Source: Zygnema circumcarinatum SAG 698-1b (Eukaryota > Plantae > Zygnematophyceae). From it: a stretch of DNA of 64,000 bases. Of the stretch, positions 1-34,183 are shown piece after piece; the stretch's first letter is position 1, and each line of letters begins with the position of its first letter. The notes under the pieces are model-generated. The model was not told the DNA's origin, did not search any database, and saw only the letters and a program-made list of their open reading frames with translations. The stretch covers positions 1,240,001 through 1,304,000 of the forward strand of contig CM074815.1 of NCBI GenBank assembly GCA_037447605.1. Direction: 5' to 3'. Made by a program: the position numbers and the translations under genes.

Positions 1-3
1 TAG

Positions 4-2975
4 GAATACTTCGAAATGGGCAAAGCGTATTCTGCAGCGTGGACTGACTGCTCGGACTAATCCTGAGTCAGATGCGACCCGGGTAGCAATCGCAGAACAG
101 CTCCAAATGCACCAAGATCTGAAAAGGAAGATCCACTCGGCAACCATTGGGAGGGAAGATGAGAGTGATGAGGAAGAAAGTGATTCTGACGAGGAAGCAG
201 CACAGGAGGGAGAGGGGGAAGATGGAGGGGCTCTTGATGGAGGGAAGGTGAGGGGACTGGTATTGGGAAGTGGTAGAAATAAGATATTGGCCAAGGGAAA
301 GGCTGCAATGTTGAAGGAGCTGGAACATAACCCTGACGAAGATGTTCCTACAACTGGACTGTTTGCGCTGCCTTTCATGGTGAGGCCCTAAACCTCGAAC
401 CCTCTTCCAGAGGCAGCTCAGTATGTGTATAAAGGCTTACGGAGAAGAGAAGGTTTCTTTAGCCGGGGAGGAAAAATGAAAGTGTTAATTTAAGAACTTT
501 GAAATTCAGCTGCTGTAGCCGAACATACTTTGAGCAGGAGTTAGATGTTATGACTGCTTGAAACTAATTGGGAAGAGGATTTTATTTAACGCCCTCTGAT
601 GTATGGGCATTACAGGCACGCGCAATTGAGAAGAAACGCAAACAGGCAGAGCAGGAAGCCATGGCTGTGTTGCGGGAGCTTGAAGAGGAGGCGGAAAGAC
701 AGCATTCGGATTCGGATGGCGAAAGAGAAGATGGGCAGAGCAGGGAGGAAGCAGAGGGTAATGATGACGGACCTGTGTCTGGCAGAAGGAATTTTGGATC
801 TGCTGCTATGGCTGCCGATAGAGGTGCTGAGCAGGCGGGGGAGGATGGGGAAGAAGATGGAGGAGAGCGTGCAGGCGGCAGTGAGGGCGAATGGAATGAA
901 AGCGAGGATGCATCTGGTGATGAGGGCAAAGATATCAGGATGGGGAATGGTGGGAGAAAGCAGAGCCGAACGTTAGGGATTGGAAAGCAGAAGGCCAAGG
1001 TTCATAATTCACGTCTGAAGGCTACCTTTGAAAGCGAAGAAACAGGCGGGGCGACAGTGGAACTTCCGGAGGATGGAAATGAAATCAGAGAGGTATGGCG
1101 TCTGTGTAGGTTAGGACATAGTTTTTGAGTGATTGAATTAATGGCATTGCATCTCACTCCTTGCTTGCCTCAGTGTTTGGCCTGTTATTCTTTGCCGTTT
1201 ATGTTTTTTCATGTATGCCCTGAACACATCATCCAATTTTGAATCGTCTATGGGATCAGAAAGAAGCTTTGAGCCTTGCCTGCTGGCAATAATCTTCATC
1301 TGGAATGGAGGCAGGTGGATATGTTTGGATGGGTGGAGCTGATGGCGGAATGATAAAGAGTATTCATGGGTTATTTTATGGCCTTTGCAGGTGGGCGTGT
1401 CTGCAGAATTCACTGTGAAAATGAAGGAGCCTTTCTCAGTGTATGACTTTACCGAGGATCACAGTGGCCCCTCCTTTCGAGAAGATGCAGAGGAGGGAGC
1501 ACCTTTGGTAGCCAATGCTGAACTTGAGAGACGAGCAGTTGCTGGTAATGGGGAAGCAGCAAAGGAAGGTCGGAAGTCTGTGGGCGGAGCTAAAAGTTAT
1601 GCCTCTTCCTTGGGGAATAATCCATCTCTTTTCGGACCCCAGGAAATGGGCAGCCAAGGGAGTAAGGCGGCAAAGGAAGGAAAGGTAAAGAATAAAGGGA
1701 CAGAGACAGAGAATGGACTACAAAGTGAGCGCGGTAAACAAACTAAGGGGCAGCGTGGAGAAGATAAGAGTGCTGCGAATGGGAAAGTTGCTAAGCCATT
1801 GGTTTCTACGGGTGTGCCTGTGGAGGACCAAGAGGAGGAGCAGGACTTAGAAGACGACGAGAAGGTTGAGGATGAGGATAATGGGTTTGATACAGGACTT
1901 GGCTTAGGTTCTGCGACTGAAATACCTGAAGGATCGTTTCTTGATGCAGTGGGGTCGCAGAGGGAGCTTATACAGAGAGCATTTGCAGGTGATGATGTTC
2001 AAGCTGAGTTCGAAGAGGAGAAGGCGGAGGCATTGGATGCGGAGGTGCCTCGTCAGGAGGGCCCTGTGACTTTGCCGGGATGGGGGCAGTGGGCTCACAC
2101 TCAGAAAAAGAAGGGACCACCACAATGGATAGTGAAGGCGAAAGAAGCGGAGGATAAAAAGAGGGAAGCAGCGCTAAAGAAGAGGAAGGACGCGGTTTTG
2201 AAGCATGTGGTGATATCTGAAAAAGTAGACAAGAAGGTGAGTGGTGGAGGTAGCCAAATAGACTGTCGCTGTGCTTGTTTGAAATGTCGCTCACCTGTCT
2301 CTTGTCATTCAGAAGTTAGTGAATCCGGGGAATGTTGAGCAGAGCTCGGCCCTTCCCAGCATCACCCTCAACATCACCACATTAACATCACCGCAAATGC
2401 CATCAACACCCCCCCCCCTCCCCCCCCCCCCCAACCCTAAAATGCTGAAGTCTGTGTGGAGTGATGGCATGGCATGTCGACTTGGTGCAGGCGGCCAAGT
2501 ATGCGCACGCACAGGTGCCGTATCCTTTCACTTCAAGAGAGGATTTTGAGCGGAGTCTGAGGGCTCCCATTGGCCCCGACTTCAACACTGACAAGGCCTT
2601 CCGCAACATGACTCGCCCGGCTGTAAGTTTTGGCATATATGGCTTGCGATCATCCTTTGTTGCTTGCAAGAAGCCTCTCAGGAGCATTGGCCAGATTATA
2701 TAGGGCATGGCTAAGGGGAGGCTGTGATTCTCTTATGTCAGGAGGATGCCATGCGGAAAAGCTCTAAGTTGCTCTTTTTCTTGAAACTGAGGCATTCGTG
2801 ACGGTTCGATGTGCAGATTGTGAAGAGTGTGGGGACGGTGATAGACCCCATAAAGTATCAGCACAGCTCGAACACGGAAAAGAGCAGTAGAGGGGCAGGG
2901 AGTTCGGGCGGCAAAAGGAAGGCTTCCGCTCAGAATGTCAAGAAGGCCAAAAGCTTCAAAGTTGGGAAAGACTAG
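4..2975 (+). CDS. UTP14: U3 snoRNA-associated protein 14, 3' part of a multi-exon gene (5' end outside window)
   Basis: Exons with GT-AG boundaries: 4-379, 616-1092, 1391-2236, 2491-2622, 2817-2975. They join in frame and give Utp14 motifs NTSKWAKRIL, GLFALPFM, LPGWGQW, VPYPFTSREDFERSLRAPIGPDFNT and GTVIDPIKY. Stop TAG at 2973-2975. Confidence 0.93.
2409..2440. repeat. C10-T-C13 homopolymer followed by AACCCTAA, in a UTP14 intron
   Basis: Read directly at 2409-2432 and 2433-2440. Confidence 0.85.
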
Positions 2976-4616
2976 AGCCGGGCGTTGGGCCGATAGTGAA
3001 GCAGGATGTTTACGTCTTAAACGGGCAGGGATTAATGGGAAGCCATGAGCAGATCGGATTGTTGCGAGCATCATTGCAGGTGTCGAAGATCTCTTTGGGT
3101 CAGACTCGTGTGGGAGGCTATGGTGGTGTTGGCTTCTATGATGATGATGTCATGCGTAGGATATTGACGGCTTGTCAGCCTCTTGGGTGTGAAGTGTAAA
3201 CACATGGAGCTGTTCCATGTTCACTGTTCCGTTTTAGTTAGATGTACACCGTTTGGCTCAGATGGCCATACGGTAGTGTAGATCCAACTTCGAAAATTCG
3301 CTTGTTTGGGCCTCAGAATTCACTATTGTTTTGGAAATCATAAATTTGTGGAAGGTTTGCCCAAATTCCGCTCTCACGAGTTCTGAGCCTTTGCGGGCGC
3401 CTAGAAAGTCCGTATTTTGGAATTCAGCTAAAAAAAATCCGAATTTAACCTACAGTAATATAATTTTAGCGGACACTGGAGCGTCTGCACAGTCACTTCC
3501 TTTGGGCACGGTCCCGTCACAGAAATTAAACACTGCAAGAAGTTCTTCGAAGTCCTTCAACTTCTTATGCTTCTTCTTGTGTCTTGTTCTTCTTCTTCTT
3601 CTTTTCTTCTACAAAAGTCTTCTGAAGTCAGAATGAATAATGCACGTTTCACATGTACACGTTTGGACGTTCCTGCAGTTTAGACAGATCTGGAACGAAA
3701 AAGCAAGAGAAAGCAAAGCCACCCAAACGCCGCAAAAACTTCATCCGCCCTCGGCATCCGATAGATATGCACGATTTCCCGATGCACGATTTGCATGCAT
3801 CCGTCTCCGCAACGTCATCCCTTTGCGTCCAACATCAATTTGGAACTCATTTGTCGTAACAACTCAGCATTTTGTTGACTTTGGTGCTCCAGTGCATCGT
3901 GAATGCTCTGAACAGAGAGCTGCTGAGCCATCGAGGAATTACGGACACCGTCGCTCCAACGAACATCCAGTCGACAAATTCAAATTTACCTGCAAATGGA
4001 AAATAACCGCTTTCAAGAGCTCACAAGGTGAGCGTCTCTACCATGCTTTGTTTGGACTTACTCGACTAGGAAGCAATGGCATCGGATGCTTCCACACCCA
4101 CGACTCCATTCACAAAGAAGCTGACAGGCCCAGGCCATACATTTCGTCATTGGAATCATGACTACTCTCCCGTAACCACGTGAACAGTCTTCGACAGACC
4201 AACAATAAAACTGGTTGATGATGAAACAGTGCTCCCCGAACTGGTTTATTAAAAGAATATATACCGAAATCTTAAGAAAAGAAAAAGAAGTGAATCTACA
4301 CTAATATACACTGAAGGTCATCAAAATTTTGCAACGACACGCTCTACAAATTGGCGCCAAAACCCACAAAGCAGTGGGCTCGCACCATGTCCTGTCCTCC
4401 TGTGCGCGCTTGTAGGGCTTACGTCATCTGGTTTTCTGTGGCGCTAAGCGACGGGAGACCTGCGCATACCACTTCGCTCTATTGTCCACCTCTTTTCGCG
4501 ATAAGCTGATGACAGCAAAACGCAAATTTTCTCGCAGAAACTCGACACGACTTGACCGTATCACCGAGCCACGGCCTGAGTCCACCAGCACGGCGAATCG
4601 CTAAAAAAAACGAAAG

Positions 4617-4716
4617 CGGGAAAGAGAGGGAGAGAGAGAGAGGGAGAAAGAGGGAGAAAGAGGGAAAGGGAGAGAGAAACGGGAAGGAAAGTGAGTGAGA
4701 GAGGGAGGGAGAGAGT
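4617..4716. repeat. GA-rich low-complexity tract just 3' of the minus-strand GH16 stop codon
   Basis: Purine-only run gggaaagagagggagagagagagggagaaag... read directly. Confidence 0.85.
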
Positions 4717-4717
4717 G

Positions 4718-6959
4718 CTTAGTCGCTGAGCGGAGTGATGCGCAGGCCCTTGTAGTGCGCCACGAAGGGCATGTCCTTTCCGTCCCACTTCCCCGTCCAG
4801 TACCAGTCGCCGTACTTGACGGAGCTCGCGTTCCAGACGGACGCGTAGAAGAAGACGGGCTTTGCCGGGAACGGCTTCGCGCCGTCCTTCTGCGCCGTCT
4901 GCCGCACCGCGCCGTCCACCAGCCACCTGCACCGCCAAGAAGCAAAGTCGACTGTCAGTCTTGGACTGGCGGGAAAGAGCAGTAACGAAGGGAAGGTTTT
5001 ATCGAAAGTGAAGTCATCAGCGAGCAGAGGGGATGGAGGGCGCGCCCTCACTGGATCATTGTGGGGCCGTAGCGGATGGTGTAGGTGTGAAAGGCTTCGG
5101 AGCAGTCAAAGCCGAGGTCGATGAAGCCTTCGTGTCCACCCACGCCATTGACATAGTAATTGGTTTGCACGCTGTACTTGTCCTTGCCCAGCCACTCGAA
5201 GTCGATCTCGTCCTGCACGGCCTCGCCGTTCACTTGGTATCCCTCCTTGGAGGACAGCTGCCGCCCACAAGAGCAAAGCACCGTCAGCCATGGTTCAATC
5301 ACGAACACGACAAGTAATACTCAAAAGCATGCAATCAAACACGCAGACGATCCACTTCCGATAGATTAGGCGTTGATTGCTCTTCGACTGCTTCCAGTGT
5401 TGTGGTCGTGCAAGCTTACATAGAGGGAGGAGAGGAGTCCGCTCGTATCACCAGCAGGGCACTTGAAGGAACCCGTAAACTCCCCGGAAGCATAGTACCT
5501 TGTGCTGTGGAACCGTCCTCCTGCAGTCCAATGACCATCCCACAAAAACCAGAGAGAGCATGAGTGCACTCTCAGAAAAACCGAACCTCACGATCAGCCA
5601 AATAGCTGCCCCATTAGCCCATGCATCGCCCAGTCACTGGCCAGAGTGGAGTTGCGAGCGGATCCACTGACCGCACTGACTGGCGTCACAGGTGATGGTC
5701 TGAGAGTCGGATTCAATGGTGGTCTTTCCGCCATAGAGACCGTTGTCGATGCCGATTGGGTACACGCGAGCGTCGGGCAATGCTGTGGGGAAATCGGGGA
5801 TGGCGGAGATGGGGCTTTGGTACACGACATCGTGGAAGGAAGAAGTGAATGTGTCGGCGCCATCGGGGACGCGCACGCCCCACGTGTCACTCAGCCACTT
5901 CTTGTTGCTGAGGGCGAGGTACAAGTAGAGAGGCTTGTTGGGGACGGGGCTCGAGAGCCACATGGTCTTGTCGTAGATCTCGAGAACGTTGTTGTCGCTC
6001 TTCCACCTGCAACACACGCAATGGACAATAGTTGTTCAGCTAAACGGAAAGGCATGCGAGGGAAGCTCTGATATGCATGGCATGTCTCCAAGTGAAGCAC
6101 GGCATGCATTCAGGCATGACCCGTGAGGCAGGTTTCAAGGCGCTGACATGATCTTCTCCGGAGTCCAGTAGATGGAGTAGACATGGAAGTCTTGGGAGCA
6201 GTCGTATTCGAGGTCCACCACCATGTTCCAACCGCTCTCGCCGTCGACCATGGTGTTTAGGAGCACGATGCTGCGGTCGAATCCGGGGAACTCCATCGTG
6301 ATGGACGACCGCCGGGAGTCGTCCGCATCCGACGACAACTGCAATGCACGCCACGTGGCAGGAGGATCGCGAGGGTAAGAAGAATAAATTGGACTCCTCC
6401 CAACACGAGGGCACACAGGCCTCTTTGAGTGGGTTTTTTGGAGTTTGAGGCGCGTTGGGAGCTTACGAAGAAGGCGGTGTTGAGGCCGTCGGCGCTCTCT
6501 CCCGTTGGACACTTGATGCGTGCGGCGAACTTGCCGGAGGTGAAGGTGGAGGCGGAGCGGAGGCGGGCCCCTGCCATGAATGAACGCGCGGCAGCACACA
6601 AGGGAGGGATTGCAGTGAGGCCCTTGCGGCGTTGCAGAGGGCGGCCATTGCACAGCGAGGAGAGGGGCGACGCACCTTTGTACGTGGCCTTGCGGAAGGT
6701 GAGGTCGTAGCTGTTGGCGGAGGCGGCCACATTGGCGCCCCCCCCCTCAGCGAGGAGGGCGGTGGCGGGCGTGCCGGCGAGCGTCTCTGCGAGAACGGCG
6801 CTGTTGGCCATGGCGGCGAGGCAGCTCGAGGGGGCGCCCAGGAGGGCGAGGGCTGACGTCAGCTGGGTCGCCAGGCGCGTCCCCGCGGGAGCAGTGCATT
6901 GCGAGAGGAAGTGCCGCGCCCACGCCGCCTTGTTGCGCGCCTTCCCCCACGTGCCCGCC
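4718..6959 (-). repeat. Left arm of a 2,242-bp apparently identical inverted repeat (partner 14051-16292)
   Basis: ORF-track translations match across frames with constant coordinate sum 21010, so no indels. Introns checked by eye are exact reverse complements. The match breaks at 6960/14050 and 4717/16293. Confidence 0.93.
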
Positions 6960-7315
6960 CCCGCCAGAGTCTTTGCGTTTTCCACGGTCGTCAATGCTCT
7001 CCCTACGCTCTTCTTGCATGTCACGTCACCTGCCCCCAGCGGGAGCGACTTCATTGCGGCCATCAGCGCGCCCAGCTGTGGGTCTACGCCCCTCGTGCAG
7101 TTCATAACCGGTGCATGAATCTGCGCGTCCATAAGCTCTGATTTCAAGTCGTGAATAGCTGGGCTGTTGTCTGCGGCCGGCTCTTCCAGAGCCTCCCCGG
7201 TTGGATAGCGCTCTGTGCCTCGCAGATGTATTCCCCCGTCAGCCGCCGATGTAGGCCTGAAGGAGCAGTGGAGGGCGAAGTAGGCGGCGCAGAGGAGGAG
7301 GCGAGAGGAGGCCAT
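4719..7315 (-). CDS. Secreted tandem GH16 (EG16/XTH-like) protein, copy A, 7 exons
   Basis: ATG at 7315 with hydrophobic signal peptide [19 protein letters not shown]. Exons mirror copy B (coordinate sum 21010). Domain 2 has [34 protein letters not shown] and FYASVWNAS. Domain 1 has SITMEF in place of EIDFE. Confidence 0.88.
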
Positions 7316-7349
7316 GGCGGCGGGGCAGAGGAGCGCGAGGAGGGAGGCG

Positions 7350-7475
7350 GCGGCGACTTTTAAAATCTGAGCGCGCCGCGGCCGCCGCGGGGGCGACGGC
7401 AACCTCCGTACGGCCGGACGAATCGCTGTGCGCTTACGTCTCCGGTTCGCTTACGCTCTTTGCACACGTGGCGCG
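7350..7475 (-). promoter_or_regulatory. Promoter of GH16 copy A: TATA-like TTTTAAAA, GTAAGCGCACA motif, G-box/ABRE CACGTGGC
   Basis: Block gcggccgcggcgcgctcagat(a/t)t(a/t)aaaa and GTAAGCGCACA (7427-7437) are shared with the copy B promoter. CACGTGGC at 7465-7472. Confidence 0.6.
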
Positions 7476-7974
7476 TTGCGATTGGGTGAAGTGTTCCATC
7501 AGGCGGTTTTCAAGAAATGACGCGCCACGAAGAATGCGCTTTTTGCCGGCCTTCTGTGCCGGTACCAGTACCCGCGCGCTCCCAATCAGCGGTCGCCACG
7601 TGGACGAGTTATGGCCCACCCCGATTATCGGAGTGTCCGCCCATCTTTTGTCGGTACAGTAAATATACGGACGGACAATGTACTGTACGGCACAATCTCT
7701 AGCATGAATCTTCAAGGAACAGTTGTTGGCTGGCGGCTGAAGCACGGAAGATCTGCTTCGCAGGGACGCACATTCGGCCGTCGATGTGGGTGTGATCGGT
7801 CGGCGAGGATTCACGCTGATCGCAGGACAAAAAAACAAATTTAGGACTGGTTGTCGCAAGTGACGTTTTAGTGTGGTCCTCTCTCTCTCACTCTCGCTCG
7901 CGCTCTCTCTAGCTCTCTGCAGCATGCTTAGATTACTCGCCTGCAATGCAATGTAGACCTATGGAGGCTATGCT

Positions 7975-8251
7975 GTCCCCCGCCGGCAGCCAGTGTAGGC
8001 CTGAGGGAGCAGAGGAGGGCGAAGAGGACGGCTTACAGTGTTAGGTGAGGGGAGGCCATGGAGGCGGAGGCCATGGAGGCGGAGGCCATGGCGGCTGGGC
8101 GGAGGAGCGCGGGGAGGGAGGCGGCGGCGCCTTTTTAAATGTAAGCGCGCCGCGCCCGCCGCGGAGGGGAGGGCGGTCGGCCGCCCGAGGGCGACGTGGG
8201 CGCCGGACGGACCACTGTGCGCTTACTATGATTTCTTGCGGTAAGCGCACA
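7975..8251 (-). pseudogene. Third, truncated GH16 5' end: promoter plus signal-peptide fragment with a premature stop
   Basis: Reads MASASMASASMASPHLTL*AVLFALLCSLRPTLAAGGG, against copy [30 protein letters not shown] 15-bp unit is triplicated at 8051-8090. TAA at 8033-8035. TATA block and GTAAGCGCACA are retained. Confidence 0.8.
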
Positions 8252-8489
8252 ATCCCGTGCATATGCGGCGCGTTGATACGGAACTAAATAGCGCTCTGTC
8301 GTAAAACTGCCACCACAGGGAGCCCGTTGGGCCCTGCGGACACGGCGGGACGGGAATCGGCGGGCCGTACTGGAGTTAGTCATTGGAGCTGATCTGATGG
8401 CTGACTAGCTGTGGCTGGCCAGAATCTCGCTAATAGCCACGCGTGGCTGGAAATACTAAATGGCAATATTGGTTAATCATTTTCTGCTG

Positions 8490-11400
8490 ATGGCTAACCA
8501 AGTCGAACCTGCTAAGGGGGTGCTGCAGCAGGAGGTGAGGTGCTGCCTGCTTGGAGGGAAGGAGGAGGCAGGGGGGTGGGGGGCTGCAGGGCGCTCCCTT
8601 GTTGAGCAGCAGGGGAAGGGCAGATGTTGAATGTATGCTGGAGAAGGAAAGGAGGGAAGGAGTGAGGAAATGGAGAGAGCTTGCAGGCCGATCGCGCCTC
8701 CGAAGCTGCAGATTTCTGCAAGCTTGGTGGATGCCGTCCTGCTTTCTGCCAAAATATAATTCTCGCAGTTCTGGATGATGGCGTCGAATGCACAAGAACG
8801 GCGGGTTATGATCGTCTATGGTACAGTAATTTGCATCCAGAAATGCCAGGTTTCGTCAATACAGCTGCACTGCTTCAGTTTCATGCTGACAAGCAAGTGC
8901 ACAGATAGTGAAGGCGAAGCTATTGACGGTCAAGGAAAATCCTCACGTTTATTTCATTTGCAATTTCTTCTTCATATTCGAATCTACATAATGCATTGCC
9001 GGAGCCAACTCAACTCGACTTAGAAATCTGTAGATTCTGAAACTGACATGGCAGAATTCAAAGTATTGAGTGAAGACGTTCTTTTTCAATGGAAGGGATA
9101 TTGACTAAGACATCTAGCCCAAATGTGATTGACTTTGCTTTCGGCAACTGGTCATGAAATGTGCATCATTTGGTTCTCTCGGCGCAGATCCCAAAGGAAC
9201 TATTAGAACGACATCTGATACGCAAAGCAGTCCTGTGGTTCATCTCTGCCACCCAAAGACTGGTATGCATGTAATCTTCGGGCCTTGTTAATGAGTCAAA
9301 AGTGCCATGGCGAGGTCGTCGAGTAACGTCATGTTGTTTACATTGTTTGAATTGCGCTGACTTGTGCAAGGCGTTGTGAGACGTATTCACGCGAAGAGAC
9401 TTCCGACCAAATTTGTTTGTGCCAGCAGGCTGCCTTGTTTTGTAGGTTCAATTTGGCATTGTGGTTCTTCCTGGGACATGTTGATTGTTTCTCACTTATG
9501 CTTACTTGACGATGTGACGATGGCATCTCGTAAAATTTCAGCTTCAATCGTGTCATAGAGTAATGGAACCTGACAGCAGTTCTTGTGTGTTATGGTTGCA
9601 GGAGCTGCTGCATGCTATCTACTGCACGGTTCCTATTTGCAGGAGATTCATTGGTTTAAGAACAACCTGTCGTCATGGTTTGTCGGAGAGTCTGTTATTG
9701 AGGGTGAGTTGCCAATGCGAGGGCGATTTTGCGTTCTGTCTGGGAGCATGTTGGTTTCTTTGCTCGGTGGTTGTACAGCTCCAATATAAGTCTCCGTGAA
9801 CAATGCATGGCAAACATCCATGGTGACAAGGTGCCATCAAGTCCCGGGAGGTCGAATGTGAGATGAGACATTGATTTCAATTCCTTGGGACTATATCGTA
9901 TCGGCGCATTGATTGAATCAACTCCTAATTTGTTAAAGCACAAGGCTGCATATTCCACGCTCGCTTCGGTGACGGCTTGCCGCATTCCCTATAGCACATT
10001 GTTTAGAGCATTTGCTGAAAGCGCTGATTCATAGCTGTGTGCAGGGGCTGGTCAGATGGCAGCCTGTATTTGTCGTCTCCAGTGGACCCATTGTTCTTAA
10101 TAATCGGACCATTGGAGCGTGCTCGGATGAAGGTGCGATTCTGAATTTGATCGCAGACCTATGCTTCTCTGTTTCATAGGCCAAACATGTTTTTTCGGAT
10201 GTGCATTAAGCCACAGAAGTCTAGGAACCATCATATAATTGAAAACTTCAAAATATTTCTGGCATATGCGTGTATTCTGTACACACTCAGACCATTTCGT
10301 ACGTGGATGCACCTTGACCCTAGCATGCAGTACAAGTATGCAATTTTTCATACACTGGTAGACTGTAGCCTGTTGTTCTCAAAAAATGGCTCGTATCTCT
10401 TTTTTATGTTGCAGAAGGGTGATCATGAGGGCAATTATCGAACATTGGAGGACATACTTTCTGTCGATGGCTTTCCTGCATACGGAACTTTGCAGCCCCT
10501 GGTGGAAGACAGGCTGAAGCTCATCTGCTCGCTTAAAGGTGAGCTTCTACCACTGCAGCTTTGAGAAGTGAGAGAGGAAAGGTGAGAGCAGGTGAGAGAT
10601 TTGGAGAGGAAAGGGTAATGTATTGCTTGTGAATTGGAATGTGATGCAGAGTTAGGAGGGGAGATGTATTTTCGTATGGATGACAAACGGACCGTGGCTT
10701 GGCTCTGCTGCAAGGTGCTCATCGTCATCGCTCATTATCCCCTATGCTGCACAGATAGATGTATTTACATATAACTAACTTCTTTTTCCCATACGGGTGT
10801 TTAACTTCAAGGCTGATGAGCCAAGGAGCTCTTCACTTTCTGATGCAGGTAAATCAGACATGTGCAGCGCTCCGAAATCATGGAGGAAGGACAATGGCGT
10901 CAATTTCTGACCTTGATTTGAGTAAGTCATCTTGACCTCTACTTCCCAAAGATTGAGATGCAGACGTGGTGCCCATATACTGTTCTGCAGTGAATCGACG
11001 TATGTTTGTGGTAGGTGGAGTCCTCCCGTTCTGAAAAGGATTAGTTTTGGGTTTGCGGGCCTTTTGGCTTTCCAATGCATGCCTGAAGACTGCTCTGAGT
11101 CGCATTTGTTTCGAAGATGATCGTTTGGCTTCAAATGTCCCATTCCTGGAGGCTTATTCCCTTGCTGCTACTCTATTGGCGGCTCTATTGGCTGGCTGAA
11201 GCTGATCATAGGCTGGGGAGGCCGTTTGTAAACAGAGACTTATGCCGTGGGCATGCTCGGAGAGTATCTGTCTGACACGTGGCACAATCGGCTTTCCTCG
11301 CAGTTTGGGTAAGCTAAAAACCTCGACTTACACTTTTGCTTCTCTGACTTTTCAGATCCTGCGAAGGAGTTCGTGTGTTCGACAAGGCTGATCGGTAGGG

Positions 11401-11997
11401 TGGTAGCTTAGACAAGCTTGGTGCCCTTGTACAAAAGCTTCACATTCATCTAAACTAAATTGCAGCATGCAACTGATTGCGTGGGAGGTACGTCCCTACG
11501 TGGGTCCCTACAAGGTCCAATTGGAATCTATAGGACATGGAGACTTTCTGAAAAGATGAACTTTACCTCTCTGCAATCATCAACCTGTCAATTGATGAGT
11601 GTTTTTTTTTTTCTATAGAGAAATTCAGTGCTGTGCTCACTTTTTTGTTATGCAAGCTTGGGCTCATCTTGTTCAGTGTCGACCTAGCAGCAGCCAAAAA
11701 GCAGCGAGAAAGCAGCAGCACGGACCCAATAGTTGTGACCCCCCAGGCGTCCCTTCAGGTGAGACCACATACCTTCACAACTTTTATGCTTTATGGTAGA
11801 TGTTGGTGCCTGCTTAACAGTGTCTGGCATGTTTCTGGAACTATGTGTTTTGGGTTTGTGGAGTGATCTTACCTTTCGATTTTTGCACGCAGACCCAAGC
11901 TGCTAATGCACAGAAGAGACCGAAGACTAGCAGCCTCAAGAAAGGCCTCCAACCAGGCGAGAGGAAAATCACAAGCTTTTTTGTCCAACCGCGTTAG
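8490..11997 (+). CDS. RNASEH2B: Ribonuclease H2 subunit B, multi-exon
   Basis: Exons about 8490-8534 (tentative), 8769-8820, 9189-9262, 9603-9703, 10056-10132, 10415-10539, 10650-10714, 10849-10921, 11236-11309, 11677-11758, 11893-11997. Motifs: HLCHPKTG, YLQEIHWFKNNLSSWFVG, DGSLYLSSPVDPLFL, EDILSVDGFPAY, YFRMDDKRTVAWLCCK, GMLGEYL, and C-terminal PIP-box-like RKITSFF. Confidence 0.88.
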
Positions 11998-12542
11998 GAC
12001 GACAACTTTTGGAAGAGTGTCTTTAGGAGCGCGTCAAACATGCGCCATTGTATTGTGCGAGTAGTCCGCGGATGTTGGAGCCTTCAAGCGCGAAGATGAG
12101 TCTTCAAGCACGAAACACGAAATACAAATTACGATATGTCAGGACTGGTCTATTCACTCACCAAGTGCGGCTTCATGTTTTTTTAAGGTCGCCAAATTAG
12201 TTTCATTAGTTTCCAATTGGCTGGTTGATTTTTTTGTTGTTTCTAGCTAGAATTATCTTAAACAGAATAACTAAGTCTCCGGGTTTTGTGTTAGAGACGG
12301 GAAGGCTCTTGTTTCTCACAGCATAGTTGCTTTCCAGCGCAGCGGCTGAGTATTCATCTTGTGCACCTGCTTTTGGAACTTTGAATCAGAATTCGAAAGC
12401 CTCTAAATTTGGGATTTGCGAATCAGGCATTCGCTGAGTCGAAAGTCGCCAATGCTGTCCAAAAAAATGAACAAGGAGAGCTGATACCGAGAGGTGTGAG
12501 AAAGGGGGGCGGGAAGGAGCGGCGAGTGGGGGAGAGGGGAGA

Positions 12543-13050
12543 GAGATACAAGAGAAGGCACGTGTCATGTGTCTTTCCATTTGTTCCTTTGCAATCTGCA
12601 CCGAGAGAACCAAATGGTGCACATTTCATGACCAGTTGCCAAAAGCAATGTCAATCCCACTTGAGTAAGATATCTAAGTGAACACCTCCACGCGACATTT
12701 CCGTTGGAAGCACGCCTGCACTGAATACATTGAAATACGCCATGTCGTTTTCGGTGATCTTCAGAGGTCTAACCCGGCGCTTGTTGGATCCAGCAATGCA
12801 TTTTGTAGATTGTAACATGAAGAAGAAACTGCACTGGAATAGCCCTCAGGGTTTGCCTTCGGGTTCTAACAGCTTCACCTTCACTATCTGTGCACTAGCT
12901 GATCGTCGGCATAAACCTGAAGCAGTGCAGCTGTACTGAAAAATCCTGCCATTCTGAATGCGATTTCCGTGCCCTTATCGCCCATAACCCGCCGGTTTCC
13001 CGTGCTCATCCACCAGCCCTCCCTGCGAGAGCGATATTTTCCGCCGAAAG
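12543..13050 (-). pseudogene. Decayed inverted copy of the RNASEH2B 5' region (exon 2, intron, start of next exon)
   Basis: Reverse complement aligns with about 8742-9245. Example: gattgacattgcttttggcaactggtcatgaaatgtgcaccatttggttctctcggtgcag vs gattgactttgctttcggcaactggtcatgaaatgtgcatcatttggttctctcggcgcag. Translates to WWMSTGNRRVM vs FWMMASNAQERRVM. Confidence 0.82.
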
Positions 13051-13054
13051 AAAG

Positions 13055-13085
13055 GAGGGAGGGAGGGAGGGAGGGAGGGAGGGAG
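13055..13085. repeat. (GGGA)n microsatellite
   Basis: ggagggagggagggagggagggagggagg read directly. Confidence 0.85.
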
Positions 13086-13467
13086 GCCGAAGCTTCAGGC
13101 TCAAGGCGCCAGCCTGCCACCTGCGAATATATCGCGGTACCACCGGCGCATCGGCCGGGATAAAACAGGAAGTTGCCGGCGCGGCCGCCGGCAGGCCCGG
13201 CGCTGGGCGGCCATTGGGCTGCCCGCCGGCCGACCGGCGACGCCGGCAACTTCTGCCCGTTACCAGTGCCGATGCGCCGACAGATATCGCGATATATCGG
13301 TACCTCGACGCTTTCCGCCCTATCCAATCGACAGCGAGGCGGTCCCTGCCGACTGCTGGACCCTTCGATCCCGTCGGTGGCCGGTGGCTCCTGATTGGCC
13401 CTCCCTCGACCACTTAAAATACGTCACTTGTGCACAGGTTCATTTGCCTAACGTACAAGCCGTACCG

Positions 13468-13597
13468 GTAAGCGCACATCGATCAAAGTCTTCGCGCGGC
13501 GGACCGACGTACGGAGAGCGCCACGTGGCGCCGCCGCGGCCGACCCCCCCCGCTGCGGCGGACCGGCGGCGGCCGCGGCGCGCTCAGATATAAAAAG
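13468..13597 (+). promoter_or_regulatory. Promoter of GH16 copy B: GTAAGCGCACA motif, G-box/ABRE, TATA box
   Basis: GTAAGCGCACA 13468-13478, CACGTGGC 13522-13529, TATAAAAA 13589-13596 (85 bp upstream of ATG 13674). Confidence 0.68.
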
Positions 13598-13673
13598 GCG
13601 CCGCGCGGCGCTGGTGCAGAAGCCGCCTCCCTCCTCCCGCTCCCCTGCCCCGCCGGTCCTCCGCTCGGCCGCC

Positions 13674-16291
13674 ATGGCCTCCTCTCGCATCCTCCTCTGC
13701 GCCGTCCTCTTCACCCTCCTCTGCTCCTTTGGTCCTACAGCGGCTGCCGGCGGTGGCAGAAGGGCACTGCGCGATACAGAGAGCTTCCCGACCGGGGGGA
13801 CTCTGGAGGAGGCGGTAGAAGACGAGAGTAGCGTAGACCTGTTGTACGATGGAGATTCAGAGCCTGAAGATGCGTGGGATTCCCAGGCCCAGGCTGTGCA
13901 TCAGAGCTGCGCGGCGGAGGTGGACGAACAGCTGAGCGCGGTGGCAGACGCCATAAAGAAGGCACTCCCGCTGGCGTCAAACGACCTGGCGTGCACACGG
14001 CGGGTCCGCCGGGCAGCCATGGCGGTTGAAGGCGGGAAGAAGCTGATGGAGGCGGGCACGTGGGGGAAGGCGCGCAACAAGGCGGCGTGGGCGCGGCACT
14101 TCCTCTCGCAATGCACTGCTCCCGCGGGGACGCGCCTGGCGACCCAGCTGACGTCAGCCCTCGCCCTCCTGGGCGCCCCCTCGAGCTGCCTCGCCGCCAT
14201 GGCCAACAGCGCCGTTCTCGCAGAGACGCTCGCCGGCACGCCCGCCACCGCCCTCCTCGCTGAGGGGGGGGGCGCCAATGTGGCCGCCTCCGCCAACAGC
14301 TACGACCTCACCTTCCGCAAGGCCACGTACAAAGGTGCGTCGCCCCTCTCCTCGCTGTGCAATGGCCGCCCTCTGCAACGCCGCAAGGGCCTCACTGCAA
14401 TCCCTCCCTTGTGTGCTGCCGCGCGTTCATTCATGGCAGGGGCCCGCCTCCGCTCCGCCTCCACCTTCACCTCCGGCAAGTTCGCCGCACGCATCAAGTG
14501 TCCAACGGGAGAGAGCGCCGACGGCCTCAACACCGCCTTCTTCGTAAGCTCCCAACGCGCCTCAAACTCCAAAAAACCCACTCAAAGAGGCCTGTGTGCC
14601 CTCGTGTTGGGAGGAGTCCAATTTATTCTTCTTACCCTCGCGATCCTCCTGCCACGTGGCGTGCATTGCAGTTGTCGTCGGATGCGGACGACTCCCGGCG
14701 GTCGTCCATCACGATGGAGTTCCCCGGATTCGACCGCAGCATCGTGCTCCTAAACACCATGGTCGACGGCGAGAGCGGTTGGAACATGGTGGTGGACCTC
14801 GAATACGACTGCTCCCAAGACTTCCATGTCTACTCCATCTACTGGACTCCGGAGAAGATCATGTCAGCGCCTTGAAACCTGCCTCACGGGTCATGCCTGA
14901 ATGCATGCCGTGCTTCACTTGGAGACATGCCATGCATATCAGAGCTTCCCTCGCATGCCTTTCCGTTTAGCTGAACAACTATTGTCCATTGCGTGTGTTG
15001 CAGGTGGAAGAGCGACAACAACGTTCTCGAGATCTACGACAAGACCATGTGGCTCTCGAGCCCCGTCCCCAACAAGCCTCTCTACTTGTACCTCGCCCTC
15101 AGCAACAAGAAGTGGCTGAGTGACACGTGGGGCGTGCGCGTCCCCGATGGCGCCGACACATTCACTTCTTCCTTCCACGATGTCGTGTACCAAAGCCCCA
15201 TCTCCGCCATCCCCGATTTCCCCACAGCATTGCCCGACGCTCGCGTGTACCCAATCGGCATCGACAACGGTCTCTATGGCGGAAAGACCACCATTGAATC
15301 CGACTCTCAGACCATCACCTGTGACGCCAGTCAGTGCGGTCAGTGGATCCGCTCGCAACTCCACTCTGGCCAGTGACTGGGCGATGCATGGGCTAATGGG
15401 GCAGCTATTTGGCTGATCGTGAGGTTCGGTTTTTCTGAGAGTGCACTCATGCTCTCTCTGGTTTTTGTGGGATGGTCATTGGACTGCAGGAGGACGGTTC
15501 CACAGCACAAGGTACTATGCTTCCGGGGAGTTTACGGGTTCCTTCAAGTGCCCTGCTGGTGATACGAGCGGACTCCTCTCCTCCCTCTATGTAAGCTTGC
15601 ACGACCACAACACTGGAAGCAGTCGAAGAGCAATCAACGCCTAATCTATCGGAAGTGGATCGTCTGCGTGTTTGATTGCATGCTTTTGAGTATTACTTGT
15701 CGTGTTCGTGATTGAACCATGGCTGACGGTGCTTTGCTCTTGTGGGCGGCAGCTGTCCTCCAAGGAGGGATACCAAGTGAACGGCGAGGCCGTGCAGGAC
15801 GAGATCGACTTCGAGTGGCTGGGCAAGGACAAGTACAGCGTGCAAACCAATTACTATGTCAATGGCGTGGGTGGACACGAAGGCTTCATCGACCTCGGCT
15901 TTGACTGCTCCGAAGCCTTTCACACCTACACCATCCGCTACGGCCCCACAATGATCCAGTGAGGGCGCGCCCTCCATCCCCTCTGCTCGCTGATGACTTC
16001 ACTTTCGATAAAACCTTCCCTTCGTTACTGCTCTTTCCCGCCAGTCCAAGACTGACAGTCGACTTTGCTTCTTGGCGGTGCAGGTGGCTGGTGGACGGCG
16101 CGGTGCGGCAGACGGCGCAGAAGGACGGCGCGAAGCCGTTCCCGGCAAAGCCCGTCTTCTTCTACGCGTCCGTCTGGAACGCGAGCTCCGTCAAGTACGG
16201 CGACTGGTACTGGACGGGGAAGTGGGACGGAAAGGACATGCCCTTCGTGGCGCACTACAAGGGCCTGCGCATCACTCCGCTCAGCGACTAA
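13674..16291 (+). CDS. Secreted tandem GH16 (EG16/XTH-like) protein, copy B, 7 exons
   Basis: Exons 13674-14334, 14440-14543, 14672-14862, 15004-15338, 15490-15590, 15753-15958, 16084-16291, all GT-AG and phase-consistent. Signal peptide, then a Cys-containing Ala-rich N-domain, a degenerate GH16 (SITME, 14705-14719) and a catalytic GH16 (EIDFE, 15801-15815). Confidence 0.9.
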
Positions 16292-16292
16292 G
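14051..16292 (+). repeat. Right arm of the 2,242-bp apparently identical inverted repeat (partner 4718-6959)
   Basis: Same evidence as the left arm. Confidence 0.93.
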
Positions 16293-17288
16293 GGCTGCGC
16301 GAGGGCGACTCCATGGGTAGTTTAGCGACGCAGGGAATCTGCTTACAAAGGCCATACGGCCCACGGCTTGTGGGCGGGGAGAGGTGTCGGACAGGGCCGT
16401 CACTTTCCACTTTTTGGCACCAATTTGTAAAGCTTTATGTATAGCGAGTCGTTGTAAAGTGGTCTGTAAGTCTTTAGCTTTTGTTAAATATAGGACGCCC
16501 TAAATGTACATTCATATTTATTACAAAAAATCGTATCTGCTTTGAGAATCTATTTTGAGGAGCAATGTAAATGTTTTATCGTCGTCGAAATTTATTTGTT
16601 GGCAGTGGTCAGCTACTTGCCTCGTGTTTGACAAGAGGGCAGTCATTCGTCCAATCATGGCTTGTATGGCCTATGAATTCTAGCATGCTTGTGCTCTGCC
16701 CTAATGGTTTCGTCGAGTGTAAAGCTATCCGTCATCATTTTCTTTCTACCTGAGTCAGTCCAAACAAGCCAAGGTGGAGGCGCTCATCCTGTGAGCTTTT
16801 TAATGTAGGTTTTGTCCATTTACTGATATATATAGTTGACATCGTTGCCCTGAGTTTTTCGGGTCGACAATATCCATATCCTTGGCAGTTTCGACAATTC
16901 TATGCTGAAAACATTTACTTTTTGCTGGAGCTCCCAACTCAACAAAGTACATAGCTGCTAGCACCCTTGACTTTGAAGGAAAATTTTTGACGAACAACAA
17001 AAAGAAATGCCTCATTTTCAAGTGGTTTTATAGAAAGGAAACAATCAGCAGTCATCCTAATACAACAGAGACACAGCAGTGTCCAGTTCGCCAAAAAAAA
17101 TGTGGGCCTCACTAGAGCCAAAGCAAACAGTCGCTTCTCAATCCAGCACTAGTCCCCTAAAGGAACGTCTCATATAAGAACTAGGTATATTGCGCAACCC
17201 AAATCAGATTATATACAGCCAAAACTAAATGTACGCCAGTTGGCTAGTCTTTCAAGCAGTCACAAGTCTGCCGCTCCTGACTATATCA

Positions 17289-18705
17289 TCACTGGTCAAA
17301 GTCTCTTGGTTGAAATCCATCACCCAGAGTTGCTTTGGCCGGGTCTTTCAGAAACTGGTTTTCTGCAGTTTCACTATGGTAAATGCAAGAGACCTCAGGG
17401 GCTTGCCGCAAATCTCCCACAAACCCGAACGTGTTCATATTGCGCTTGCAATCCCTGACTTCTCTTGTGTTGACAAGGCCTCGCGACTCCAAGACTTGCC
17501 AGTTGCTTTGCCTTAGAATGCAGCCAGGCTTCACTTCGGCCTGTGAAACATAGACATTAAACCTGCAGAGCAAGGACAATTCGCTTCCCCTCTTCAAACT
17601 AGACATGTAAACATGCAGACCCACCATGCAGCATACAGCTTGGAAAGGTCTGAAACGAAAGGCCAGCAACAAGCGAATCCACAAAAGCGCTTTAACAACT
17701 TCACCCGTCCATATCATCTGGTAGCCATGCAATAAAGGCTACCATTGGGTATTAAGAAGTGTCACGTACGGGTTAAAGGAAATGAACAGCCGCTGATCGA
17801 GCACCATCGCACTAAATCCATTAGCGAGGCATATATCAGGATTTGGAGTCTTCTGGTCAATCACGTCCCTCGACGCGACATTTGAAGGCTCAGTATTCAC
17901 TAATGTGCTCATCGCAATGCCGGCCCCTATTCCCAATACAAAGACGCTTGCAAGTACAAACTTGTTCGCCCCTTCAAGAATGATTTTACCCCCAGGCGGG
18001 CCTTCTGAGTTGAAAGGTCCGACCAGTCGTTTCCTCGTCCCACCCGGCCCATAATCACCCAGCTCTGATTCAAAGTCATCTTCAAGCCCCGGAGGCGAAG
18101 GTCTCGTCCGCCTGCTGACAGGATAGTCAGAGTACCTCTCTTGAAATCTGCGCCTTGTAGCCTTTATGACTCTGGTTGGCCTACTCCTTTCAGAAACTCT
18201 CCTTCCTTTCTCATCTCCCCATCGTAATCCCTCGGCGTCCAATTGACACCTTTGGGTAAGATAGTGAAATTTCAGAGTTCCTGAAGCACTTGAATCTAGT
18301 CTTCTAGTCAGCTCGTCCTGCAACTGCACACAAACTACCGCAGGTTTTTCAGTAATCAGAAAGAACTACAGCACCAAAAAACAAAACTTTTCGTCCGCCT
18401 CTCCACAGCACCTTAACTAATTTCATCTCCAAACACAAACTCGATATTCTTGCTATGTCATAACTACCAGAAATACGGAAAGACCTGAGAGTTACGAAAT
18501 TAACAGCAGCATCTTTGGCTTCCTCTAGCGACTCATTCCTAATATGTAGTCAGTCTACTCCAATGCTTCTGCATTAGTTTCGCAAATGGCCTGAGAGGGT
18601 TCACAATCGTACCGACATTACGCGCCGCTGAATCATTCCACGCCCAGTAGACACGCCCATGATTGACTCAGCAGTTGCAGAAGGAGAAGTAAAGGGCACC
18701 GTCAT
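17289..18705 (-). CDS. DUF3172-family protein (cyanobacterial-type, probably plastid-targeted)
   Basis: Exons about 17770-18324 and 17289-17562 give VFVLGIGAGIA, VASRDVIDQKTPNPDICLANGFSAMVLDQRLFISFNP, FNVYVSQAEVKPGCILRQSNWQVLE and CKRNMNTFGFVGDL. The first exon (ATG 18705, S/T-rich) is tentative. Confidence 0.8.
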
Positions 18706-19436
18706 CGTCACCTGTTCCTTTCAATAGGCAACCCTAATAGTCCATACATTCACAACGCAATACAATGCTGAAAAAACCTCCAAGATGCTTCGAAATGCTT
18801 CCTCAATCATCTCCAGCAGCGATGAGCTTCAAACGCATCATGCCAATACCATCCCCTCTATCGTCGACACATTCAGAAAATCACAAATTCCTCTTTTTTT
18901 TCCTCTTCTCGTTGCCCTGCCTTGCCTGTTCCAGAAGAGGTCTCAAAGGCGCCCTTCCCTCCCTTTCAATTCATTCCTTTTGAGCCACACGGCACCAGAA
19001 GCGCCTGCTGCATACCCTAAATATTTTCGGGCTCTTTATCTTCTGACCATGGAGGCTTAGGCTCTGGGCCTGCTTCCCCAGCACAAAACATAGCCTCGTC
19101 ACCGTCACAGTTCAACGCTGGCCCGTCAATATTCCTCTCCATATAAGCCAGTTACAGTTCACGGAGCCCCCCTCATAGAGCAGAAATTATCGAACAGTAG
19201 CGTAAAATGTTATTTTCACCATGAAGTGTTGACTCGCCGTAGAACTACGCCGTGACGGTAGAACATGGAACGGCATGGTGGACGTCCATATTCGGCCGCC
19301 TCGGCTGTACTGGGAGGAGCGCCTGAAGCTTGAGTTGTGAGAGGGGAAGAGAGGGAGAGGGAGGAGGGCGGGAGGAGGGCGGGAGGAGGGCGGGAGGAGG
19401 GAGGAGGGAGGAGGGAGGGCGAAGGGGGTGGCCGCC

Positions 19437-22400
19437 ATGGGGGAGGGAGAGGAGGTGACTGCAGTCCCTGTGACGCGGGAAGAGCGGAGGAGAGAGAGGT
19501 CGCCGGAGAGGAGGCGGGAGCGCTCTCCCCCTCGCGGCCATAGGGACGAGAGAGATGAGCGTAGGAGAGGTCGGAACGACGAACGAGGGGAGAGGAGGGA
19601 GAGAGAGAGAGACAGGGACAGGGACTACAAGAGGCGGAAAAGCACCAGTCCTCCATTTCGTGATCGCCGGCACTCGCCTCGCTCTCCTCCATCGAAAAGG
19701 TCAAGGCGGCAAACGTTGCAAAAGCATTATGGCAGTATTTGAAGCCAGCAGGATGTTTTGCCATATTTCTAGCGCTGCAGTCTGCACTCCTTTGTTAGAA
19801 AATATCCTGGACTGCGTCATTACGCAGAGGGAAACTCCTGGCCTGCACGGCAGGGGGGGCCCTGGTGCCCTGCCTTTCTGGCTTGCAAGATTCCCCTCGT
19901 CCTGCAGGAGCCTACAGTTTTCTGGTTTTATTGCTCCTAGTGCACTCTTCTGCTTCTCCTCACTGTGCTCGCCGACTTGCTTTTGGGATACGGAGAGCTT
20001 CTCTTCAGCGGAAGCGCTGCAACTGTTTGATTCTGGATAGATTCAGCGAGATGAGCCTTCGTTATGTAGATATTCTCATTGCTGAGGACCTCTCACACAT
20101 AGAGCTTTACAAGTACGTTTAAGTTCACAATAGTTATTACTTGCAAAAGCTCGTCACTTTTCAAGTCTCTTCCAAGTTTATGGTTCTTTAGTGTCACTCC
20201 TATTCCTCTCTCTAGCTTCCGAAATTTATCCAAAGTCATAGATTCACATTTGAGAAATGATCATTCCAACAGCTGTAGGGCTTGTGCCTCATAACATTCA
20301 CAGACATGTATGTAGTGCGCACTCTCTCGCAGAGGTAGCTGTAATAGAACTAGTCCTCAGATGTGACTCGCCTGCCATTTAGAAAGTAGACGCTGCCGAG
20401 TTTAGTCGACAGGAAGGCTTCTCGCCCTGCGCTTGTGGAGGATTCCATTGGGCTTCATGTGACGCAGATGCTGTGCACGTCGCTCGCTTCAATTCAGTTT
20501 GGTGAAGGCTCAAGTTCACTTCCAGCATATCAGAGGAGAGGGTCAATGTCGTTTGATTGTGGACGTCGTGCAAAGCACTGCATCAGTTTGTGCTCTATGT
20601 TGGATTGTACTGAAGCTGCCTGCTTGTTTGTGATCTGAAGACTTCTCCTTTGTTTTTCCTGTTCATTCATTTGTGATGTTGTCGCCATTGTCTTGCATGC
20701 TAGGGACGCAACTCAAATCATTTGCGGCATTTGAATATTACTGAAGACACAATTGCTTGTCGCAGGCCTGCGTACGATCCTTATGATCGCCCTCGAGGAT
20801 TTGCTGGAGATTTACGAGGACCTCCAGGTGCGCTCCTGCAAGGTTTCTCTCTGCATAGTTTGAATACTTGCCAGTAATTTTATGGATGGGCTTCCCTTGC
20901 AACCAGATTACTGATGTTGTATGGTTTGCCATCGAAGACCACTACATACTTGGTTTATGAACCATGCGGCTTATTACGAGCGTTGCTTGTTGTCTGCAGA
21001 CTGGTCACGTCAAGGACGTAATTCAGGTTTTGATGTCCCACCTATGGGGGGATACAGTGGTGGTGAACTGCGAAGGTCAGTTTTGTTTCATAGTAGCTTT
21101 GCATCGTCATTAGAGGCTATTTGATTCTTCCATTTCTAGGCTTACAAATCGGAGAACCATCACATTTACGGTCACATTGTGTCGGTAACATTTCTCCGGT
21201 TGATATTTTCATGGAATATGCAGCGACTTTGGTGGACTGTTGTCGTATAAACAGTTTATTTTGGACCTTGAGGATGACGTTTCTCCTGCAGAAGCGCAAC
21301 GAAGGTGAGTCTTGCATGACATCCGTCTAGGCCCTCCTTACTTCATTTCTATATTTTTTGATTCTCTATTACTAATTTCTAACTTTATTAACGAAATGAC
21401 TTGAATGAATGGGATTGGAACTTGTGGAACCAAATTTTGTTGGTTCTGCGCTTCCCAGAATCCGAGCGGCTCTCTTATTGTGCCCGTCTTTTGCCCGCGG
21501 AGCATGTTCAAATGTATGTTTTAAAAGTAGTTCCATTGTTGACAAATCGAGTTGCTGAAGGTTCTGGTGTGCTGTTCTCGGTTTGCTAAACAATTACATG
21601 AACTCCCTTTGAAGCATGCCATCGTGGAATTGCTCAATTTACTTGTCCAGCGTTTGTTTCCAGATACGAGCTATACAAGAATGACTTCATCGGTATGCAG
21701 AAGCAGGCATTTTTCAATCAGCACAAAGACGAAGACTGGTAAGTCGCATGAAGGGCTGCGATTCCTTAGTCTTTTGGTTGATTGTAAATGCATTGATGTA
21801 TTGCTGGTTTTGATATCTCAATTCGTTCAATGGTTGCTATGTAAGAGTTTTTGGAACAGAGACGTATGGGCTTGATATCCACTCTTATTGCAAGCAGCTC
21901 ATTACTGAATGTGCATTTTCCACTTGTCCCCAGGTTGCGAGAGATGTACGATCCTCCGCGATTGGAAGTATTTCTCGTTAGGTAAATTTTGTATGGATCG
22001 GATGGTCGGATGTATCAATACTTTTTATTTTGCATGAGTGCCAGGTAGTTAACGAGTTAAAAGAGGAAAGCTTTCTTGTATATACGTAAGAGCTTTGGTC
22101 CTGTACAGAGTAAGCTGTACATGGACCTTATCCAAGTCAATAAATGTACGTACCATGACGCAATGTCCGCGTTTTTTTAATATAAATTTGTAGTGCTTGT
22201 TATAATTGTTCACCGAAGCATTTAGTTGGCTATTTTGAAGCTAATGGTTAGTGCGTGCATATGAAGCGAGAACTCTTACATCTCCCACATGACATGAGTG
22301 CATCGTAACCTTTTGGCAGGCGGAATGAGAATGCCCAGGGTGTTTCCAAAGATTATTTGGACATAATTTCGGCTGGCCAAGTAGACGTGTAAGTTGACTT

Positions 22401-33460: not shown

Positions 33461-34183
33461 ACACCAGATTATGATGAGCCGTACGGTAGGATCTGACTGT
33501 ACGGTAGGGCACGGCTGTGATTGGAGATACAGTACAGTACGATAGAATGTACAGATGGATTTTTTTTTGGAAAATTCTATTCTCACACCTTTTTTGTCTA
33601 CACACAGGCCTCTTTTCGCCGGGCAGATTTTAAAATAGCACAAAAAAAGAACACACCTTTCACACCTTCTCACCTTTTTTTTTTCACCTTTTTTTTCCCA
33701 CCTTTTTGAAATCGATACACACCTTTCTCCATCGGGCAGATTTTGTTGTACAGCACTAGAGACTGTACAACGTTTTGGGACATAGACTCTCTAGGGAGGT
33801 TAGATGCGCCTTGCAAGTGTTAGAGGCGCATGTGTACGAACGTCCGAGTATACCGTACTGTGCCGTACTGTACTGTACCGTACCACTTTTACCTGGTGTA
33901 CGAAGTGTACGGACAGTATAGATGTACAGGAAGTGTGGCGTCGCATCGCCACGCATAGGAGTCAGCCTTCTGACGGCTAAAACCCCTTTTAATCGATCTA
34001 GCCGCTTTCAGAGAGCTTTGCCGAGACGTTTGGCTGTAGCCAGGGCAGGTGCTTATGGGATATGTGTGGGTTAGTGCAAGGAGGGACAAGTAGTGTGGCA
34101 CTGCTTTACATACCTTGTACTCATTCATTGAAAACAAGAGTTTTGGGCCGGCGGGGCTTTTCTCAATCTGTTGAGCTTGTCTT

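Follow-up and report, generated by a model that had tools for sequence, protein, structure and literature searches.

Embedded tract of perfect identity between two diverged, inverted GH16 genes of Zygnema circumcarinatum

How two neighbouring, oppositely oriented gene copies can be identical base for base over 2,242 bp, introns included, when the sequence directly beside that tract has diverged to 62-63% identity is the question raised by a locus on contig CM074815.1 of the zygnematophycean alga Zygnema circumcarinatum SAG 698-1b (assembly GCA_037447605.1). Here, we describe this locus within a 64,000-nucleotide stretch (positions 1,240,001 to 1,304,000 of the forward strand), which is the window referred to below and within which all coordinates are given. 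The two genes, denoted A and B, are predicted to encode proteins with two GH16 domains each and lie in the arms of a decayed palindrome. Recent gene conversion between these inverted paralogues appears to be the best explanation of the tract, a reading that we hold with considerable, if incomplete, confidence.

An identical tract inside an old inverted duplication

Base-by-base comparison of both arms showed that positions 4718-6959 are the exact reverse complement of positions 14051-16292, with 2,242 consecutive matches and 0 mismatches, precisely the intron-containing identity that an initial annotation of this DNA had reported from inspection of the letters; in the first 101 bp inward of the tract, the same comparison counted 40 mismatches. 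A windowed alignment of the arms, which that annotation had proposed as a check, gave the same picture: in 100-column windows of the global alignment, identity is 100% throughout the tract and 62-63% directly inside it, both edges are sharp, without an identity gradient, and many indels appear outside the tract. Even at the best background identity of the arms (83%), the probability of 2,242 matches in a row is about 1e-181, and the 95% upper bound on divergence within the tract, synonymous divergence (dS) included, is 0.0013. The inner edge falls at codon 126/127 of exon 1 (gene B numbering, ATG at 13674) and the outer edge one base past the stop codon (16289-16291 in B, 4719-4721 in A), so that the limits first proposed, from the middle of exon 1 to one base after the stop, proved accurate. 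All five introns of the gene model lie inside the tract, and about 707 bp of intron sequence are identical between the copies; the count of six introns given earlier was too high by one for the predicted in-frame model. In a repeat search of the window, the inverted arms (4718-7060 and 13950-16292) were the sole long inverted repeat in the 64 kb.

The tract had been described as the outer part of an 11.6-kb decayed palindrome. The decay and the inverted orientation of the arms are evident, but neither the size nor the terminal position holds, because diverged homology picks up again beyond the tract. The outer flanks realign in inverted orientation (A 4253-3844 versus B 16541-16973; 63% identity over 437 bp, E 9e-32), with a Smith-Waterman score of 79 against 23 +/- 2.3 for shuffled sequences and 28 for the wrong orientation. 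Copy-specific sequence separates the tract from this outer homology, with a length of 464 bp in arm A and 248 bp in arm B. The palindrome thus spans approximately 3844-9222 and 12561-16973, about 13.1 kb in total with arms of 4.4-5.4 kb, and the tract is embedded within it rather than terminal. At the inner ends, where 8799-9222 and 12994-12561 share 75.5% identity, alignment moves the boundaries from the 9245 and 12543 given initially to about 9222 and 12561; the arms enclose a unique spacer of 3,338 bp (9223-12560). The parts of the palindrome, from left to right, are as follows.

3844..4253, no strand assigned: outer old-homology block of arm A, pairing inverted with 16541-16973 (63%, E 9e-32)
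4254..4717, minus strand: copy-specific 3' flank of gene A, unalignable to B, including a (GA)n/(CT)n low-complexity run at 4612-4715
4718..6959, minus strand: identical tract, copy A (2,242 bp), covering the 3' two-thirds of exon 1, exons 2-6, five introns, and the stop plus one base
8799..9222, plus strand: inner end of arm A, 75.5% identical to 12994-12561, upstream of and continuous with the central plus-strand RNASEH2B-like gene
9223..12560, plus strand: unique spacer with the body of the RNase H2 subunit B-like gene (weak exon matches at 10028-10141 and 10619-10771)
12561..12994, minus strand: inner end of arm B, which duplicates just the 5' region and loses homology at 12561
14051..16292, plus strand: identical tract, copy B (2,242 bp by base-by-base comparison)
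16293..16540, plus strand: copy-specific 3' flank of gene B, unalignable to A
16541..16973, no strand assigned: outer old-homology block of arm B, pairing with arm A 3844-4253

The (GA)n/(CT)n purine/pyrimidine run, about 100 bp long and present in copy A only, adjoins the outer edge of the tract and is a possible break site or conversion barrier. No other copies of the arm sequences, and no third GH16 copy that might have served as an alternative donor, were found within the 64-kb window, and an Rfam scan of positions 1-20000 gave no match.

Outside the tract, the arms are old. Their alignable non-coding parts are 62-83% identical, with Jukes-Cantor distances of about 0.5 in the outer flank and beside the tract, 0.3 in the inner end 8799-9222, and 0.19 in the block comprising promoter, 5' untranslated region (UTR), and signal peptide. 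In the 5' coding part of the genes outside the tract, 68 of 128 aligned residues are identical; over codons 26-118, nonsynonymous divergence (dN) is 0.47 and dS 0.79 by the NG86 method, or 0.53 and 1.18, respectively, by maximum likelihood (ML). The dS of 0.79-1.18, the 62-83% non-coding identity, and the many indels together establish an old inverted duplication, compared to which the tract is recent. The dN/dS ratio of about 0.45-0.6 in the diverged N-terminus indicates relaxed purifying selection and gives no support for positive selection on this region.

The divergence of the N-termini and 3'UTRs noted at the outset stands, and the promoter block has diverged to intermediate identity (about 82-90%). 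Sequence adjoining this block has changed more (62% versus 82% identity; dS 0.79 versus 0.20), a difference that could reflect functional constraint on the block, given its TATA-like element, or an older transfer. An extra degenerate copy of the block in arm A indicates that the locus was rearranged more than once. Within this third copy, 8047-8095 is a 15-bp tandem repeat in which ATG units recur, and a stop eight codons past the ATG overlaps a GTAAGC that resembles the splice donors of the gene itself; the copy may serve as an alternative first exon or be a dead duplicate.

Base composition also differs across the tract edges. The GC content at third codon positions (GC3) reaches 0.83 in the converted coding sequence (CDS), compared with 0.70-0.72 in the rest of the CDS and 0.48-0.54 in the DUF3172 gene next door, and intron GC is 0.53 within the tract versus 0.42-0.49 in the flanks. 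The raised GC in the tract is compatible with GC-biased conversion over a longer time, although domain composition could produce the same difference and the fit is no proof.

The GH16 genes and the gene between them

The gene models were predicted from three-frame reading and splice sites, and domain searches were run exon by exon. The features of the two genes are as follows.

4719..7315, minus strand: gene A, 629 aa, with exons 7315-6467, 6338-6148, 6006-5672, 5520-5420, 5257-5052, and 4926-4719
6960..7315, minus strand: diverged 5' CDS of gene A, encoding a signal-peptide-like N-terminus, a linker, and bundle helices 1-2
7225..7405, minus strand: core promoter (TATA-like), 5'UTR, and CDS start of gene A, at intermediate identity to B (about 82-90%)
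7965-8180, minus strand: extra degenerate direct copy of the promoter/5'UTR/start block, in arm A only, 79-88% identical to 7232-7400, with an early stop
13555..13770, plus strand: core promoter (TATA-like), 5'UTR, and CDS start of gene B
13674..16291, plus strand: gene B, 636 aa, with exons 13674-14543, 14672-14862, 15004-15338, 15490-15590, 15753-15958, and 16084-16291

Both frames (629 aa in A, 636 aa in B) are intact, with one terminal stop, and the last 510 residues of the two proteins are identical. The predicted CDS of gene B totals 1,911 nt and is interrupted by five GT..AG introns, each with a GCAG 3' end; a shorter alternative for intron 3 (15373-15439, versus 15339-15489) likewise preserves the frame.

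The predicted protein of each arm consists of a signal-peptide-like N-terminus, a four-helix bundle, a GH16 domain without the catalytic motif, and a GH16 domain with it. The two GH16 domains per protein were recognized by Pfam (PF00722; E 1.9e-16 for 15702-15962, 1.6e-6, and 1.6e-4), share 35% identity with each other, and have intron positions in common. At the position of the catalytic ExDxE motif, domain 2 reads DEIDFE and domain 1 reads SITMEF; from this replacement, domain 1 is predicted to be catalytically dead, and domain 2 to be an intact EG16-like enzyme domain. A PDB search with the catalytic exon only returned the poplar and grapevine EG16 structures 5sv8 and 5dze as the best solved-structure matches (E ~2e-20), followed by Bacillus lichenases (~1e-16) and the XTH structure 1umz (~1e-5). 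Secreted GH16 enzymes of the EG16-2 type have been described for charophyte algae (PMC8711696). The Zygnema protein is like charophyte EG16 and EG16-2 (PMC8711696) in the DEIDFE motif of its domain 2 and in its EG16 structure matches, and its signal-peptide-like N-terminus is comparable to that of the secreted EG16-2 of Klebsormidium (PMC8711696); it differs from them in the dead GH16 domain and the N-terminal four-helix bundle added upstream.

The bundle is encoded by exon 1. In a single-sequence AlphaFold2 model of this exon, helices span residues 64-101, 105-126, 130-145, and 150-167 (pLDDT 67-90), and the top Foldseek matches to the model were the PMEI structures 1x8z and 1xg2_B, at a weak E of 0.07-0.25, so that the modelled bundle bears a weak resemblance to pectin methylesterase/invertase inhibitors. 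A cysteine pair in helices 1-2 is preserved in both diverged copies. The Pfam scan gave no match over the bundle, an exhaustive phmmer search with exon 1 of copy B against 1.84 billion protein representatives returned none at E <= 0.001, and a word search of the protein library with the exon-1 open reading frame of copy A found no match. Residue 126/127, where the tract begins, belongs to the loop joining helices 2 and 3; the tract goes on to cover helices 3-4, and its edge thus cuts through a domain instead of following a domain border. The statement that the tract homogenises the GH16 domains is therefore correct in that these are covered but too neat, since helices 3-4 are taken along as well.

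The label RNASEH2B given to the gene in the spacer is plausible and moderately supported by two weak matches. In the piece 10028-10141, five of six weak PDB matches are to RNase H2 subunit B (E 0.33-1.8), over a conserved PVDPLFL; in the piece 10619-10771, PF09468 is matched below threshold (E 0.06, 14 bits versus a cutoff of 25). These matches are independent, lie on the same strand, and are colinear in the expected order. Of the 30-odd stop-free pieces of the spacer covered by Pfam and PDB searches, all others were without a match. Near 11970 there is a KITSFF, which we take to be PIP-box-like. Arm B matches the 5' region of this putative gene only (12561-12994), after which homology is lost, and so represents a truncated duplicate.

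Probable gene conversion and its rivals

An identical tract that lies colinear between stretches of diverged homology is a textbook sign of non-reciprocal copying between paralogues. Because diverged homology on both sides of the tract is the pattern expected of conversion, its discovery beyond the outer edge strengthens the original proposal of an old inverted duplication with recent arm-to-arm conversion, which the diverged flanks, the identical introns, and the embedded position of the tract all support. The following course of events would account for the locus. An ancient inverted duplication would have produced two head-to-head copies of a gene for a secreted protein with the bundle, the dead GH16 domain, and the EG16-like GH16 domain, taking along a piece of 3' intergenic DNA together with the 5' end of the adjacent RNase H2B-like gene, and divergence of the copies would then have come close to saturation. 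At a far later time, a lesion in either of them would have been mended by homologous repair templated by the other arm, presumably through synthesis-dependent strand annealing or double-Holliday-junction repair, with 2,242 bp, from the loop that follows helix 2 to just beyond the stop codon, pasted non-reciprocally. The outer edge would have been set by heterology, as A has its (GA)n run and an unalignable 3'UTR exactly there; it might be speculated that the event began with a break at the (GA)n run, with A as the recipient.

Several points weigh against this account. Zero differences in 2.2 kb are also what short-read polishing of near-identical copies would be expected to leave; the position of the outer edge exactly one base past the stop is a coincidence for which heterology offers no more than a loose explanation; the transfer could have run in either direction; and exon 1 is without relatives in the library, the two copies being known from one assembly. 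The first of these points leads to an assembly or polishing artefact, in which near-identical copies were polished alike or a gap filler wrote one copy into both arms. The perfect 2.2-kb identity does resemble a consensus collapse, the scaffold is gapped (five 10-N runs at 46.3-57.8 kb), and an exact 221-nt repeat adjoins one of these gaps. We nevertheless consider such an artefact improbable: there is no N run within 30 kb of the palindrome, each copy runs gap-free and with its frame intact into its own diverged sequence on both sides, and a truly diverged 3' body would offer no long common k-mers to mislead an assembler. Moreover, polishing merges copies only when their identity is about 97% or higher beforehand, and a step from at least ~97% to 62% would therefore persist and still call for a recent transfer; what an artefact would endanger is the claim of zero differences and not conversion. 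An assembly palindrome from foldback or chimeric reads was rejected because the 3.3-kb spacer is unique and the inner arms have diverged, and a transposable-element origin was rejected as unlikely, there being no further arm copies in the window. Purifying selection alone, keeping the enzyme bodies identical with no transfer, has in its favour that the tract takes in the conserved catalytic part of the protein; however, no synonymous site differs and the roughly 707 bp of intron sequence match throughout, where dS next door is 0.8-1.2, and since selection on the protein cannot explain identical introns, we give this explanation practically no credence.

The more serious contender is long-term concerted evolution, in which conversion recurred within fixed limits and the regions outside escaped, diverged, and became barriers. 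The sharp edges without an identity gradient would fit this scenario, as would the higher GC3 and intron GC inside the tract, and the intermediate age of the promoter/signal-peptide block (82-90% identity, dS 0.20 versus 0.79) suggests more than one transfer. Yet the same data are explained by a single recent event, the GC difference may reflect domain composition or codon bias, and the promoter block may be kept by function through its TATA-like element; overall, we regard recurrent conversion as possible but doubtful. Less likely again is its fullest form, in which the tract would be the standing product of recurrent, boundary-limited concerted evolution that maintains a constant enzyme chassis with a GC-biased footprint beneath two diversifying "heads" and expression programmes. 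Under that reading, the GH16 body, with its dead and its active domain, and half of the bundle would be kept identical, and helices 1-2, the promoters, and the 3'UTRs would be free to change.

Known systems, surroundings, and implications

Arm-to-arm conversion has been documented for the human Y palindromes P1-P8, for primate and mouse X palindromes, and for a willow sex chromosome (PMC8600007, PMC8327919, bioRxiv 10.1101/800185, PMC7023750). The Zygnema locus resembles these systems in its inverted, gene-bearing arms, its unique spacer, non-reciprocal copying, and near-perfect identity that includes non-coding DNA; a GC-biased footprint, reported for sex-chromosome palindromes (PMC8981503), is hinted at here. 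The arms of sex-chromosome palindromes, however, measure from 10 kb to >1 Mb and are >99% identical over their whole length, whereas those described here measure 4.4-5.4 kb and are mostly 62-83% identical, with only the 2.2-kb internal tract identical, and there is no sign of a sex-linked or non-recombining context. The locus thus falls short of the size and whole-arm identity (>8-10 kb, >99%) by which a palindrome of the sex-chromosome type is defined. It does show the hallmarks of interlocus conversion, namely diverged paralogues, a tract amid colinear diverged homology, and identical neutral sites. As in ordinary interlocus conversion between neighbouring paralogues, the tract is contiguous and sharp-edged, includes introns, and keeps the frames; nothing essential differs, although 2.2 kb is fairly long for such a tract, and one of its edges lies inside a protein domain and the other at a stop codon beside a microsatellite. 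It fits best among ordinary cases of interlocus conversion, here between inverted paralogues, and adds a further instance of a known process.

Further features of the window lie outside the palindrome. A DUF3172 gene of two exons (17289-18329, minus strand; Pfam E 1e-31 and 3e-23) is convergent with gene B. The best relatives of its protein are streptophyte; those in mosses, Closterium, and Klebsormidium are 61-72% identical, the best match (73%) is on a 1.7-kb contig of transcript size, and no identical match was found in the protein collections searched. A tandem array with a 75-bp period occupies 35553-36002, and its 150-nt units are 97-99% identical in the core. Direct 215-nt repeats at 34047-34261 and 39375-39589, 99% identical and 5.3 kb apart, are like the long terminal repeats (LTRs) of a retroelement, and an inverted pair of 84% identity (39607-39764 and 40058-40215) lies just past them. 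The exact 221-nt direct repeat mentioned above is found at 48190-48410 and 54066-54286, its second copy directly after the 10-N gap 54056-54065; it could represent an LTR or, alternatively, a duplication that the assembler introduced at the edge of the gap.

The locus most likely represents a clean, well-delimited case of ectopic gene conversion in a streptophyte alga and leaves the current understanding of the process unchanged. The tract is useful as a test site for assembly quality control. Genes A and B differ only in their first 119-126 residues, promoters, and 3'UTRs, so that short-read RNA sequencing will mis-assign most reads between them. Finally, the 7.1-kb segment 6960-14050 could flip by crossover between the perfect 2.2-kb inverted tracts, which would exchange the 3' contexts of both genes and reverse the RNase H2B-like gene.

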